This document shows, one piece after another, positions 15,826 to 45,661 of a stretch of 64,000 nucleotides of DNA. Position 1 is the stretch's first letter; the number at the start of each line of letters is the position of its first letter. The notes beneath the pieces were generated by a model that was not told where the DNA came from, made no database searches, and saw only the letters and a list, made by a program, of their open reading frames with translations. The translations under genes were made by a program, and so were the position numbers. The stretch lies in the sequence record NC_048170.1. One strand, given 5' to 3'.

Positions 15826-16719
15826 TTAATCAGCAGTGTTATAACCGAATACTGCTTTACCGTAGGTGTGGGTACCGTTAGCTAATGACAGCACCAACAC
15901 ATGGTTGTACGTAGCGTTAACACCATTGTCGGTAGAACTGGTGGTAGCACCGTTATAGACAAAGGTAGCTGTTTGCAGATTGGCTTTCAGCTCGGTGATG
16001 ATCTCATCACTTACACCGGTCTGCTCTTTGATCAGCGTGGTCAGGTTACCTGCCAGGCTTTCATTGATCTTGGTTTCGTTATTGGTAATCCCCTGTAAAC
16101 CTGCAGTGTAGGTGCTGAAGTCTAACGGATAGGTTAACAGACGTGCTGACGTTTTGGTACCATCGCCTTCATCAACGTAGGTTAAGTTACCCAGGTTGGT
16201 AACCTTGATGATGTTAGCCAGATCCAGCGTAGTGTTATAAACTTTAACTTGAACAGAGCCATACCACGCCAACGAATCTTCTTTGGCTTCCAGGGTGATC
16301 GTCTGGATACCATGCTCGTTGAAGGTAACCGGATTAGATAACGTATCGGCTTTGATGTCTTTATCTTTATCCAGGAACTTCTCACCGGTCGGCGTGATCA
16401 TACCGTAGCGTTGAGCTACAAGGTCAACCACATCACCGATGGTGGTGTCAGCAGTAACGTTAACACGTACAGCGATTTTCTGGAACCACTTAGCCAGATC
16501 CAGACGATGGTAGGTAACATCGCGGTTATTGAAGTAAGGGGTACCTTCACCAGGGCTAAGCGTTAAAGTTGCGTCTGGAGCAGAATCACTTTTGGATTTA
16601 AGGACGTATTTAAGGTCGGTATATTTGAAGTTGGCACCAGTGTCAGTGTTGAGTTTGTTAATCTCATCAACGATAAGTTGCCAAGGTGTTTTTAAAGTAA
16701 GCGATACTTGAGTTGCCAT
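15826..16719 (-). CDS. Virion structural protein, phiKZ gp131-like paralog family (297 aa)
   Basis: YHRLDL and AWYGSVQV motifs shared with ORFs at 16862, 27787, 29609 and 30471; strongly biased high-expression codons. Confidence 0.8.
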   Translation of the reverse strand: MATQVSLTLKTPWQLIVDEINKLNTDTGANFKYTDLKYVLKSKSDSAPDATLTLSPGEGTPYFNNRDVTYHRLDLAKWFQKIAVRVNVTADTTIGDVVDLVAQRYGMITPTGEKFLDKDKDIKADTLSNPVTFNEHGIQTITLEAKEDSLAWYGSVQVKVYNTTLDLANIIKVTNLGNLTYVDEGDGTKTSARLLTYPLDFSTYTAGLQGITNNETKINESLAGNLTTLIKEQTGVSDEIITELKANLQTATFVYNGATTSSTDNGVNATYNHVLVLSLANGTHTYGKAVFGYNTAD

Positions 16720-16861
16720 TTTCTACCTCTATGGTTGTTACATCACTCTCAAAAGATGTAAGTGTTTACAGAAATCAGTATATTTTATATTAATGTAAAT
16801 ATTATGGAGAACGACTCCGATTCTCCTTTTCGACCATCAAAAAATCAGAGGATACACAATC

Positions 16862-17404
16862 ATGGCCTTAGACTTTAACAAAGCAGCAAAATCCCTTCTG
16901 CTTGATCTTATCAACACCAAAGCAACCCGTTCACTGGCCGAACAAGAACTGCAGTTCGGTACTCCGGCGGCATCTTTCGAACATTCTAAGAACACCGTTA
17001 TTCAGCTGGACGCTGCGCCTGAAGCAGAAAACCTGCAGGGTACTCAGCAGTTCTACTACGATCGTCTGGCTCTGTCTGACGTTTTCGCTGATGTAACCGG
17101 CGATGTTACTTTCGAACTGCCGCACGGTACCGACAGCATTCAGGCTTCTGAACTGGTGAACAAACTGGTCACCAAATTCGGCCTGGCTTCACTGAACGGT
17201 GAAATCAAAGAAGAAACCTTCCAGCTGTCTGGAGGTACTGTTGGTCAGGTAACTCTGAATGCGATCGAGAACGGCCTGGTATATACCGGCACTCTGCAGG
17301 TTGCTCTGACCTATGCAGCAGCACCGAAAGACCAACTGGCAACCGTTCTGGCGGATAACGTAGCTGATGGCTTCGTGAAACCGACCGTTAGCGTTGTTGG
17401 CTAA
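16862..17404 (+). CDS. Short gp131-like virion protein (180 aa) ending in the shared docking-like motif
   Basis: YYDRLAL and VYTGTLQV family motifs; lacks the family C-terminal domain; high-expression codon bias; GAGGA RBS. Confidence 0.85.
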   Translation: MALDFNKAAKSLLLDLINTKATRSLAEQELQFGTPAASFEHSKNTVIQLDAAPEAENLQGTQQFYYDRLALSDVFADVTGDVTFELPHGTDSIQASELVNKLVTKFGLASLNGEIKEETFQLSGGTVGQVTLNAIENGLVYTGTLQVALTYAAAPKDQLATVLADNVADGFVKPTVSVVG

Positions 17405-17603
17405 TAAGCACATAGAGCAATAGTATGGGTTTTGTACAGCTCGGCTATTGCTCTTCTACAATTTGGTTGTAACAATCTGCGTGGTTGCACGCTTATCTTT
17501 CTCATTGAGCGCTTCGTATGAAGCGTGGTGTTGAAAGGGTTGTGGATCTCCTCAAGCGGCCAGGGACCCAGACCAACCTGAATAAACACAAACAAACCTT
17601 AAG

Positions 17604-17636
17604 CCCCTCCTCAGCCCTTATCGGGTTGGGGAGGGG
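17604..17636. terminator. Hairpin family variant between convergent genes
   Basis: cccctcc...gccc-ttatc-gggt...gggagggg. Confidence 0.7.
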
Positions 17637-17699
17637 TCTTATACGTCTTTATGCGTTTCGTTCGTTCTGGAGCGTTTTAGGGCGGTTTACGACAGGGTT

Positions 17700-18335
17700 T
17701 TATTCAACACTGAAACCATTCAAACAGATAGCTTCATAACGCTTACGTTCACGACGTTTACGCGCCTGCCAGCCGTAAATAAACTTCTCGTCTTTCTCAC
17801 GACGTTCAGCTAATTCGATGTAATAGGTGCTCTGCATATCCAGCATCGCATCGATGAGATAATCCTTACCGGTTGCGCCACGCTTAGCGATATAAGCATC
17901 AAGAGCCGCCAGTGTTTTGGGGCCCATTGCGCCATCAGCGTCGATATCTTTCCAGTAAGTTTGACGGTTGTTCATGACGTTCAGGTAACGCTGGAGGTTC
18001 TTAACCGCAACCGTTTTACCTGCATTGATACCCAGGTCAAAGAGACGGTCAGCTAAAAACACAGAACGTTTCATGACGTCATCAAGTTTCATTTTATCCC
18101 AGAAATGGGTCTTGTAGATAAAGAACGCCATTTCCGTGGTAAGGTTACGCATGTTACCGTTCCAGCCGAATTTCGTTTTCAGCGTGGTTTTGTATTGATC
18201 AGCAAGCGCTTGCGTAATGCCGTGGTTTGTACATTTTCCGCTGTCGTCTGGGTCATCAACATACCCGCCTTCAACATCGGTTTTGTCGCGAATGATGAAT
18301 TCGCAGGTAAAATCTTTTTCAGTAATCTTAGCCAT
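17700..18335 (-). CDS. Endolysin, glycoside hydrolase family 108 with C-terminal peptidoglycan-binding domain
   Basis: EGGYVDDPDDSG..TNHGIT catalytic motif; DLGINAG; DG.MGPKTL; FIYGW. Confidence 0.92.
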   Translation of the reverse strand: MAKITEKDFTCEFIIRDKTDVEGGYVDDPDDSGKCTNHGITQALADQYKTTLKTKFGWNGNMRNLTTEMAFFIYKTHFWDKMKLDDVMKRSVFLADRLFDLGINAGKTVAVKNLQRYLNVMNNRQTYWKDIDADGAMGPKTLAALDAYIAKRGATGKDYLIDAMLDMQSTYYIELAERREKDEKFIYGWQARKRRERKRYEAICLNGFSVE

Positions 18336-43275: not shown

Positions 43276-43309
43276 TTTTTTCTATTCGCAACGATAAACG
43301 GCATAGAAA

Positions 43310-43339
43310 CCTCCCCCAACCCTTACGGGCTGAGGGAGG
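43310..43339 (-). terminator. Hairpin family variant ending the MCP transcript
   Basis: Minus strand cctccc...ccc-GTAA-ggg...gggagg, then tttctatg. Confidence 0.75.
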
Positions 43340-43351
43340 CTGACTTATGTA

Positions 43352-43441
43352 TCACGGTGCCGGATGAATGTCCGGTGCAATGAAACCATCTGCAACGTTG
43401 TCATCAAGAATATCATCCAACGAAGCAGCTACGGTAGTTCA
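43352..43441 (-). other. In-frame readthrough extension of the MCP (UGA + 28 codons + UGA)
   Basis: ...VQTN-TGA-TTVAASLDDILDDNVADGFIAPDIHPAP-TGA; matches the C-terminus of the 180-aa virion protein. Confidence 0.7.
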
Positions 43442-45661
43442 GTTAGTCTGAACCGGCAGCTTGATGTTTTCAGTGTAGACCTTACGCAGGTTCACAACGT
43501 TAATCAGACCCAGCAGCGGGCAGTTGTTAACGAAGCGGCAGCGCGGCTGAACCATGGTTTCTTTAGAAACCTGACCGTTACGGGTAACCTGAGCAACAGA
43601 TACCAGTTCCGGTACATACAGGAACATACCGAAGGTCAGCGGATCCGGAGAACCCTGGATACCACGAGACAGGGTCACGAAGATCTTATCGCGCAGCATG
43701 ACGTTCGGGTTATCTACAACCACGAAGTTGAAGCTTACACCAACGGTACGGAAATCGCCATCGGTCTGCAGGAACTGCGGGATGTAGTTGTCAGTTGCTA
43801 CTACGCAACGCGGTTTCTCATCAGCGTTGGAAGACAGCAGCTGCAGAGCTGGCTGATAACCAGACTCGGAGTACATGCGGTATGCCATCTCACGAATCAC
43901 GTTCATGATCGCAGCAGACACTTCAGCACGACGTTCTGCAGTGGTGGTACCCTGAACAGATTTCTCCAGGTCCAGATTGATTTCTTCGAACCACGGACGG
44001 ATCAGGTAACGACCGAAACCTTCGATCTGGATGTCACCGAACTGACGGAAGCGAGAGGTCGCAACCGCTTTCAGTGCGTCTTTGTAGCTGAACAGTTTCT
44101 CAACCATCAGGTTGTCGAAACGTGCGTTAGCAGCTTGGATCAGAACGTCCAGGTCAGCAGCGTTTTCTTCCCAATCCAGCGGACGAGGAATGGAGAACGG
44201 AGCCAGCAGGCCGATTGCGTAACGTTCTTGCTTCATGTTGAAGTCAAGGTGCTTACCGCGCTCACGACGGTTGCTGTTGTTACGACGGATACGCAGTTCG
44301 TAACCAACCAGTTTGAAGCTCAGGTCTTCAGCCAGTTGTTTGAACTCTTCGCTCTTACGCGGTTGTTCGATGTTGTCCTGATCAACCAGGCGATACAGTT
44401 CAGCGTTAGCGCCGTTAACACGCAGACCCGCTTTCTCTACGTTGGAAGAACCGTAAACTTCGATCGCCAGCTGAGCAGCGGATTTCGCATCGATGATGTC
44501 CTGCAGCGCTTCGGCTTTCGCACCTTTAACGTCTTTGGTGTTCTCATCAACGAAGATGGAGTGGGTGTCGAACGCCAGGGTCATTTTGCGGAAGTCGCCT
44601 TCCAGGGATTTCTGGAAACCGTTGGTGATCAGACCAGATACGTCGAACGGTACGTAAGAGGTTTTGCTGTGCTTGGTAGATTTGATTTCCACCAGGATTT
44701 TGGTCAGCGTGATCTGAGCATCCAGCGCGTCGGTGTTGTCGCTGTAACCGTTAGCCAGAATGCTGTCGTCTTCAGCGATACCGATCATGTCGATCAGTTT
44801 ATCAACAGCCAGGTAAGACGTTTTATAAGTTACGCCTTTAATTTCGATGTCGCGCGGAGCAACGATAGCTTTGTCAACGAAGTACTGCGCGTTAGCATCG
44901 TCAGCACGATAGATCGGATGCAGATCGGTCACGTCGTTGGACAGAACGTCGTTATACATGAACGCATCCAGCAGCGGACGACGTACCCAATCAGCCGGAG
45001 TACCGTCAGCGTTACGACGCAGGTGGTTGAACACCAGCGGACGACGGAAAGATACGTCGTAACCGATCTGGTTCGGAGCCAGAACGATGGTGTTGTACAG
45101 TTCGTTACCCATGCGGCTCAGACGAGAAGCCTTCACGTTGAACACGACGGAGTACGGCATCATGTCACGCAGTTCTTTCTGGTCGTAGGACAGCTGAACC
45201 AGTTCTTCAGATTCGCAACCGCAGGAATCAGCAGCCATCATGACGAAGTTAGAGCTGTCAACTTCACGACCTGACGGAGTGGTGCTGATGTTCATGGAAC
45301 GTGCTTGTTTAGCATATTCTACCGGGTTGCCATGAGCCAGCATGATCAGTGCTGCTGCACGAGCCTGCTGTGCGTTCATGGTGAACAGCTGTTCTTCAAT
45401 ACGCTGCTTCTCTTCCGGAGTGGTGGTTTCGAAGCCCAGCAAGGTCAGAACCGGTTCTTCGGCTTTACGGATGTCGCTGCTGAAGCTCTTAACATCCATT
45501 TCGTTAACCAGTTTGTCCATGGATTTGAAATCAACCTTAGAAGCAGATTCCATAGACAGGAAGGTGTTCTCCAGACCTTTGTCTGCTGGTTTGCTACCAT
45601 TAGCGGTCAGGAACTGGCGAGTGGCCGCGACCTGTTGGCTAAGAAGGGTTTTATCATTCAT
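43439..45661 (-). CDS. Major capsid protein (phiKZ gp120-like)
   Basis: 740 aa; YSVVFN, YAIGLLAP, LTFGMFLYVPE and TMVQPR segments; extreme high-expression codon bias; next to the helicase. Confidence 0.92.
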   Translation of the reverse strand: MNDKTLLSQQVAATRQFLTANGSKPADKGLENTFLSMESASKVDFKSMDKLVNEMDVKSFSSDIRKAEEPVLTLLGFETTTPEEKQRIEEQLFTMNAQQARAAALIMLAHGNPVEYAKQARSMNISTTPSGREVDSSNFVMMAADSCGCESEELVQLSYDQKELRDMMPYSVVFNVKASRLSRMGNELYNTIVLAPNQIGYDVSFRRPLVFNHLRRNADGTPADWVRRPLLDAFMYNDVLSNDVTDLHPIYRADDANAQYFVDKAIVAPRDIEIKGVTYKTSYLAVDKLIDMIGIAEDDSILANGYSDNTDALDAQITLTKILVEIKSTKHSKTSYVPFDVSGLITNGFQKSLEGDFRKMTLAFDTHSIFVDENTKDVKGAKAEALQDIIDAKSAAQLAIEVYGSSNVEKAGLRVNGANAELYRLVDQDNIEQPRKSEEFKQLAEDLSFKLVGYELRIRRNNSNRRERGKHLDFNMKQERYAIGLLAPFSIPRPLDWEENAADLDVLIQAANARFDNLMVEKLFSYKDALKAVATSRFRQFGDIQIEGFGRYLIRPWFEEINLDLEKSVQGTTTAERRAEVSAAIMNVIREMAYRMYSESGYQPALQLLSSNADEKPRCVVATDNYIPQFLQTDGDFRTVGVSFNFVVVDNPNVMLRDKIFVTLSRGIQGSPDPLTFGMFLYVPELVSVAQVTRNGQVSKETMVQPRCRFVNNCPLLGLINVVNLRKVYTENIKLPVQTN

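Follow-up and report, generated by a model that had tools for sequence, protein, structure and literature searches.

The analysed stretch of DNA, hereafter the window, comprises bases 1-64000 of the genome of Escherichia phage vB_EcoM_Goslar (NC_048170 / MK327938). Goslar is a nucleus-forming jumbo phage of 237 kb that infects E. coli and is classified in the Chimalliviridae. Its major capsid protein is encoded by gp41 (Table 1). The gp41 product matches the major head protein family phrog_3231 (E=3e-164), is identical to the solved Goslar capsid chains 11bt and 36za of the PDB, and is related in PDB comparison to the phiKZ gp120 structure 8y6v. The Pfam domain PF25620, which describes the phiKZ-type major capsid protein with HK97 fold, was found on the representative of the gp41 cluster, and both sequence and structure place gp41 in this group.

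The gp41 frame ends in a TGA followed by A, remains open for 28 more codons that include neither Lys nor Arg, and is closed by a second TGA. A G+C-rich hairpin with a stem of 13-15 bp, taken as the terminator of the capsid transcript, starts 11-12 nt downstream of this second stop; a consensus terminator scan did not flag it, and counterparts exist in the related contigs L005, L007 and L051 and in Ralstonia phage RP12. A first-pass annotation of this DNA had described the two stops, the intervening codons and a distance of 12 nt to the hairpin, and every coordinate and letter of it that could be checked proved right. It had also raised the possibility of a sequencing error. Both stops are kept in 8 independent assemblies, which are 94.7-100% identical over the region, so that a sequencing or assembly error at the TGA is ruled out.

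An open run of 28 codons is by itself ordinary, as at least 25 open codons follow the stop in 11 of the first 47 Goslar genes. These genes end in TAA (37), TGA (8) or TAG (2). TGA is thus not unique to gp41, and the contrast drawn earlier between TAA in other structural genes and TGA in the capsid gene is weaker than it was made out to be, as is the argument from the open run. TGA with a following A is confined to gp006 and gp041 among the 47 genes.

A 7-bp hairpin (GGTTCAG / CTGAACT) is located at window positions 43436-43454 on the minus strand, with the gp41 UGA in its 3' arm; it is unchanged in close relatives and has no counterpart in L007. Immediately past the terminator hairpin, the sequence TATGCCG (43299-43305, minus strand) recurs after the equivalent hairpins of L005, L007, L051 and RP12. 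It may represent a promoter or start site of the phage RNA polymerase for the next gene, gp040. On the opposite strand, a 636-codon ORF (43364-45274, plus strand) runs antisense to gp41 and is codon-aligned with it. The stop-free antisense run over the capsid gene has 611 codons in Goslar, 741 in L011, 459 in L005, 182 in L007 and 72 in phiKZ. This ORF was dropped as a gene and is most likely a by-product of codon bias, namely the avoidance of TTA, CTA and TCA in a highly expressed gene.

Table 1. Position of the features discussed, in window coordinates unless a contig or record is named.
Feature	Position	Strand	Basis or remark
gp22, 297-aa DUF7941 paralogue	15826..16719	-	Pfam PF25613, E=3e-52
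gp23 (HOV27_gp023), 180-aa DUF7941 virion protein	16862..17404	+	annotation; Pfam PF25613, E=7e-20
gp23 C-terminal tail, template resembled by the capsid extension	17336..17401	+	sequence
Terminator hairpin of the capsid transcript, G+C-rich, then TTTCT	43310..43340	-	RNA fold, whole stretch z = -5.5
Second stop TGA, closing the gp41 extension	43352..43354	-	sequence; invariant in 8 assemblies
28-codon in-frame extension, proposed C-terminal tail of a minor capsid isoform	43355..43438	-	sequence
16-residue core resembling the gp23 tail, DNVADGF identical	43373..43420	-	alignment
First stop TGA, next base A; proposed leaky stop	43439..43441	-	sequence; invariant in 8 assemblies
Major capsid gene gp41 (HOV27_gp041)	43439..45661	-	740 codons + stop; ORF list, annotation
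phiKZ gp120 end: TGA-G, then 26 in-frame codons with R-Y-L-E-N/D-G repeats	L085:2510-2590 = NC_004629.1 120509-120589		
phiKZ gp143, DUF7941 protein, tail nearly duplicated by the gp120 extension	L085:27694-28227		
L042 Ig-like extension after TGA-A	L042:3143-3757		IMG/VR UViG_3300043122_000192

The capsid extension resembles the C-terminal tail of gp23, a virion protein of the DUF7941 family. As had been noted at first pass, a 16-residue match falls at the end of gp23 (17336-17383) and contains the DNVADGF core, which is encoded in the two genes with four synonymous codon differences. These differences had been taken as evidence of selection on the peptide. That argument is circular, because the core was defined as a run of identical residues. 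The local alignment of the extension with gp23 scores 55 (shuffles: mean 22.7, sd 4.0; 0 of 2000 reach 55) and stops at residue 176 of the 180 of gp23. The DNVADGF 7-mer has no further occurrence in the six-frame translation of the 64-kb window. The tail is better conserved than any other part of the gp23 family when homologues down to 44% identity are aligned (alignment A4), and none of its invariant positions is lost in the capsid extension, with one of them represented by a conservative Val to Ile change. By its score and by these retained positions the extension classifies as the C-terminal tail peptide of a short DUF7941 paralogue, which is the proposed docking strand. It does not include the globular N-terminal DUF7941 domain, and its resemblance to gp23 is confined to the final ~20 residues. 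A terminator cassette shared by gp23 and gp41 was considered and dropped, as the flanks of the two genes differ and the DNA 3' of gp23 is unlike the capsid terminator region. A PDB sequence search with gp23 gave chance matches only.

DUF7941 proteins are present in more than 2,500 subunits per Goslar virion. A 2026 study of Goslar by cryo-EM and proteomics estimated ~2,140 copies of gp23 and ~580 of its longer paralogue gp22, neither of which is visible in the cryo-EM maps (PMC13742148). The gp23 protein consists of a globular N-terminal domain and a disordered tail (PMC13742148), and AlphaFold predicts that this tail docks onto the next DUF7941 subunit to give head-to-tail oligomers (PMC13742148). 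Purified gp22 forms filaments in vitro, as seen by negative stain (PMC13742148), and is likely to be a partner of gp23 in the same assembly. The authors proposed a filament 'cloud' anchored at the baseplate and estimated ~3 micrometres of filament per baseplate site (PMC13742148). The order gp22, gp23 and the GH108-type endolysin gene gp24 (window 15826-18335) is kept in the Logan contigs L090 and L092. In phiKZ, PhiPA3, 201phi2-1 and Noxifer the short DUF7941 gene alone directly adjoins the endolysin gene, a position which indicates that the short DUF7941 genes are orthologues.

Relatives of Goslar were drawn from IMG/VR, JGI and Logan contigs. The nearest capsid protein of a deposited phage is 33% identical to gp41; megablast and tblastn searches of the phage collection with the extension returned Goslar itself only, and a scan of genome contigs found nothing. 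The survey was made on 64 capsid-gene ends from IMG/VR, Logan and named isolates, which were dereplicated to 45 Chimalliviridae clusters. TGA is the stop in 16 of these clusters, and in all 16 an in-frame extension is found in frame 0 directly behind it. The extensions of 15 clusters have 15-97 codons and carry one of two motifs. In the sixteenth cluster, L042, the in-frame stretch is 203 codons long and includes a Big_2 Ig-like domain (Pfam E=4e-9), and the related contigs L043 and L053 have a TAA stop and no Ig-like domain. Among the 29 clusters with TAA or TAG, a single one has a motif match, which occurs by chance inside a 52-codon run. The association of stop type with extension over the 45 clusters (Fisher p = 7e-10) is indicative only, since the motif patterns were written after seeing the data.

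In Goslar, L007, L019, Ralstonia phage RP12, Serratia phage 2050HW and several uncultured lineages, the peptide behind the TGA carries motif 1 (D-L-x-G-F and variants). Motif 2 (R-Y-L-E-D/N-G repeats) is found there in phiKZ, PhiPA3, 201phi2-1, Noxifer and L051, and the phiKZ extension peptide is 100% identical in about 47 phiKZ-like records. L007, whose capsid protein is ~68% identical to that of Goslar, has a TGA and then 20 in-frame codons, with a stop 5 codons further on than in Goslar; the two extensions align ungapped and in frame with the pattern S-L..L.D...DGF..P. In L019 (capsid ~29% identical) the TGA is followed by 16 codons with N-G-F..P. The capsid proteins of L005 and L006, ~71% identical to that of Goslar, end in TAA and the stretch is absent, so the capsid tail is dispensable in some lineages. 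In other phages a motif-1-like sequence is found inside the capsid protein, before a TAA and with no interrupting stop (Ea35-70, Proteus phage 10, pEa_SNUABM_48, LucasX, P0007 and L047/L055). These fused versions indicate that the peptide is a legitimate capsid C-terminus in some lineages and lies behind a leaky-type stop in others. Glycine/threonine-rich tails occupy the same position in Machina, Asesino and SEGD1.

The UGA is followed by A in 10 of the 16 clusters, by G in 3, by C in 2 and by T in 1. The leaky UGA-A context to which the first-pass annotation had appealed is thus the most frequent one and not universal. Its proposal that relatives should show a conserved stop and downstream frame has been borne out, as TGA with a conserved in-frame peptide recurs in 16 of the 45 clusters, and programmed readthrough yielding a minor isoform with a docking tail is the best-fitting reading for a trait far more widespread than had been supposed. 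The survey supports this interpretation not for Goslar alone but for much of the Chimalliviridae.

Two side observations concern individual contigs. In L037 (L037:2783-3079) the extension after TGA, with Q-G-F-A-P, meets no stop before a terminator-like hairpin, and readthrough ribosomes would reach the end of the transcript; this may be a decaying or atypical case. An ORF of 179 aa lies between the capsid terminator and the next gene in L005 (L005:8434-8973) and L006 (L006:7291-7830) and is absent from Goslar and L007. Judged from its N-terminal sequence alone, its product looks like a GIY-YIG homing endonuclease.

Covariation provides a link between the capsid extensions and the DUF7941 proteins. 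The best alignment of the capsid extension is, in each of five genomes, with the very C-terminal end of the short DUF7941 protein of the same phage, which is gp23 in Goslar, gp143 in phiKZ, gp162 in PhiPA3, gp228 in 201phi2-1 and gp141 in Noxifer. The tails of gp143, gp162, gp228 and gp141 carry motif 2 and not motif 1. Own-tail scores are 42-63 against a shuffle mean of ~21, with 0-1 of 2000 shuffles reaching the observed value, and scores across the motif classes (15-30) are at background level. The comparison covers Goslar alone for motif 1, whose largest group is the uncultured L023-L036, and the four other phages for motif 2; in the Goslar-like group, the gp23 homologues P0039 and P0049 come from other samples than L005 and L007. 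That a capsid extension and the DUF7941 tail of one phage should share a motif, and that this should hold for two unrelated motifs, has no easy explanation unless both peptides bind the same site.

These observations are best accommodated by low-level readthrough that produces a minor capsid isoform displaying a DUF7941 docking peptide, and we regard this explanation as a whole as likely. Most ribosomes would stop at the gp41 UGA and release the 740-residue capsid protein, and a small fraction would decode the UGA as sense and go on through the 28 codons until the second UGA. It is very probable that the extension is translated in this way, in one piece with the capsid protein. Among stop codons UGA is the leakiest, and tRNA-Trp is a natural suppressor of it, with ~5% readthrough in the formation of the A1 protein of Q-beta (PMC7026636). 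The most likely decoder in Goslar is the near-cognate tRNA-Trp of the host, because Goslar encodes no tRNA.

The added tail would be expected to project from the capsid surface, because the C-terminal arm lies at the capsomer centre and is probably exposed outside. The C-terminal arms of the capsid proteins converge at the hexon centre in both Goslar (PMC13742148) and phiKZ (PMC11297242). In the phiKZ penton this arm contacts the outer-surface protein gp244 (PMC11297242; PMC13250141), and GFP fused to the C-terminus of Goslar gp41 shows a capsid-like localisation (PMC13742148). The Ig-like domain of L042 likewise points to an external position of the C-terminus. Sparse extended subunits could then act as anchor or nucleation sites on the head for filaments of DUF7941 proteins, including gp23, gp22 and paralogues with sugar-binding domains. 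Paralogues that combine an N-terminal DUF7941 module with sugar-binding domains could join the free tails. For the role of the extension we lean, with some reserve, towards this DUF7941 docking.

Readthrough could also be real without any recruitment of DUF7941 filaments. A third partner, for instance a factor of assembly, of nucleus docking or of the baseplate, might bind both the capsid and the DUF7941 tails, or the capsid tail might compete with the DUF7941 tails and limit polymerisation. This would agree with the placement of DUF7941 proteins so far only at the peripheral baseplate of phiKZ and not at the head (PMC13742148; PMC13250141), the baseplate being the sole location of DUF7941 density, and with the fact that contact between the DUF7941 tail and N-terminal domain is an AlphaFold prediction and not a solved interface. 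The diversity of what relatives bear at the same capsid position, that is, the Gly/Thr-rich tails and the Ig-like domain described above, also fits. On the other hand, own-tail covariation in two motif classes is explained most simply if both tails bind one pocket, and the sole pocket proposed is the DUF7941 N-terminal domain. A role apart from filament recruitment therefore seems unlikely, if worth keeping in view.

The pattern of substitution bears on whether the stretch is translated at all. Over six separate pairs of extensions, differences at codon positions 1, 2 and 3 number 43, 32 and 71 (chi-square p = 2.5e-4), and pN/pS is 0.3-0.7, an uncorrected ratio with pS near saturation. The extension DNA of Goslar and L007 is only ~50% identical, and the peptide pattern is kept. 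Within the Goslar species, positions 1+2 of the extension vary by 8.9%, against ~19% at neutral proxies (p = 0.05), for which third positions of the capsid gene and flanking non-coding DNA were used. The same positions of the capsid body vary by 1.2%, and the extension is accordingly far less constrained than the body. Most of the replacements seen are D/E, I/V and D/N. Taken alone, the comparison of Goslar with L011 reveals no surplus of synonymous changes in the extension. The first-pass annotation had proposed to look among relatives for a dN/dS below 1; the uncorrected pN/pS is below 1 between lineages, whereas constraint on the extension within the Goslar species is only moderate. Conserved stop, frame and coding pattern are evident across the family, and the coding signal is weak within the Goslar species alone.

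This modest constraint would be consistent with an untranslated and decaying relic, either a once-fused tail that a nonsense mutation has separated from the capsid protein or a DUF7941 3' end copied together with a terminator. The occurrence of fused versions in relatives and the complete loss of the stretch in L005 are in agreement with such decay. A relic is nevertheless improbable. All 16 clusters have TGA as the interrupting stop, with no instance of TAA or TAG, frame and peptide persist between lineages at the low DNA identity mentioned above, and differences peak at the third codon position. The complete identity of the extension across the phiKZ-like records is also difficult to reconcile with decay, and the dissimilarity between the DNA downstream of gp23 and the capsid terminator argues against a copy carried with its terminator.

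Independent translation of the extension has been considered as well. A free micropeptide made by re-initiation at the UGA or from a weak internal start might, for example, cap DUF7941 N-terminal domains in solution. Start codons do lie near the beginning of the extension in L019 (ATG directly after the TGA), L035 (ATG at codon 4) and L023 (TTG at codon 4), and Goslar has a single in-frame TTG at codon 7. The absence of an in-frame ATG and of a ribosome-binding site, reported for Goslar at first pass, was confirmed, and no Shine-Dalgarno-like sequence precedes the TTG. RP12 and 2050HW have no in-frame start codon in their extensions, phiKZ, Noxifer and L051 have none ahead of the motif, and Shine-Dalgarno-like sequences are almost always absent near the extension starts. 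Independent initiation cannot therefore be the general mechanism. A separate ORF, moreover, need not keep the frame of the capsid gene, yet all 16 clusters do, and fused capsid versions exist. A free micropeptide is thus quite improbable. The arrangement found in Goslar, a stop followed by an open in-frame stretch without an independent start, is that of a readthrough cassette, and the same layout occurs in 16 of the 45 clusters.

No stimulatory RNA element shared across lineages was found around the capsid UGA by RNA folding or in Rfam, and the sequence after the UGA is not conserved as RNA between lineages. Insertion of selenocysteine is extremely unlikely: UGA is its codon and E. coli has the machinery, but no SECIS element was recognised (the Rfam search at the gp41 end gave only a chance match, E=6.4), the sole local hairpin contains the UGA rather than following it, and the post-UGA RNA diverges between lineages. 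A suppressor tRNA of the phage was dropped as a candidate, as the Goslar genome encodes no tRNA genes (annotation; PMC6563267). Since neither tRNA genes nor a SECIS-like or other known RNA element is present, decoding by a near-cognate host tRNA would be the simplest mechanism of readthrough.

Two protein products from one capsid gene are known from other viruses. The closest case by mechanism, and not by sequence, is the coat/A1 pair of Q-beta (Leviviricetes). There, a single UGA ends an abundant coat protein, and readthrough of a few per cent, ~5% (PMC7026636), places an extended minor subunit in the shell with no need of a phage-encoded factor. Q-beta is, however, a small ssRNA phage with another coat fold, and its A1 extension is a folded domain of nearly 200 residues that is needed for infectivity. 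Goslar is in contrast a dsDNA phage of 237 kb with an HK97-fold capsid, and the jumbo phage extension is a linear peptide of 15-30 residues that copies the tail of another virion protein.

By biology, the closest cases are gene 10A/10B of T7 and T3, Lactobacillus phage A2 and the Listeria phages A118, A500 and PSA (PMC5009743). In these phages one gene also gives two products, the minor one with a C-terminal extension displayed on the head, which is Ig-like in several of them (PMC5009743). They use -1 or +1 frameshifting at slippery sites, whereas the jumbo phage extensions lie in frame 0 behind the stop in every lineage, without the shifted frame and slippery site of a frameshift, which identifies the probable mechanism as readthrough and not frameshifting. 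The Big_2 domain behind the TGA of L042 can be viewed as the readthrough counterpart of the Ig domains added by frameshifting in T3 and A2. A further parallel is offered by the readthrough domain of luteoviruses, where a minor capsid isoform projects from the particle surface and mediates contact with the exterior (PMC7026636). Luteoviruses differ in that they are RNA viruses of plants; their readthrough domain is large, and termination there involves the eukaryotic machinery and long-range RNA signals. Within the jumbo phages themselves, the extension corresponds in sequence to the tail at the C-terminus of the short member of the DUF7941 (PF25613) filament proteins, which include gp22 and gp23 of Goslar and gp126, gp127 and gp143 of phiKZ. 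It is a mimic of this tail on a capsid protein, and not a member of the family.

Full-text searches of the literature yielded no account of readthrough at a capsid gene, whether of a jumbo phage or of another tailed dsDNA phage; matches concerned transcriptional readthrough or were unrelated. The published proteomics and cryo-EM of the Goslar virion do not mention readthrough or an extended capsid protein, and neither was designed to find it (PMC13742148). If the interpretation is true, this would be the first capsid gene of a tailed dsDNA phage with programmed stop-codon readthrough. The trait occurs in phiKZ, PhiPA3, 201phi2-1 and Goslar, the best-studied jumbo phages, and an unannotated capsid isoform would have to be added to models that were thought complete. 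The interpretation also provides a testable answer to a question of the 2026 Goslar structure paper, namely where and how the abundant DUF7941 filament proteins are attached, which the length of filament estimated per baseplate site leaves to be settled.

A broader possibility can be put forward tentatively. Readthrough might be ancient and widespread in nucleus-forming jumbo phages, phiKZ included, and might set the number of capsid subunits that mimic the DUF7941 tail. The filament cloud would then be rooted at capsomer centres of the head and not only at the six baseplate sites, with filaments ending in paralogues that carry sugar-binding or hydrolase domains. If such head-rooted filaments exist, the termination efficiency of the host would tune the 'hairiness' and adhesiveness of the virion.

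Recoding of this kind is discoverable by comparative genomics, because the type of stop predicts whether a conserved peptide comes next. In every annotated record examined, the stretch of 45-90 nt that holds the extension has been left 'intergenic'.
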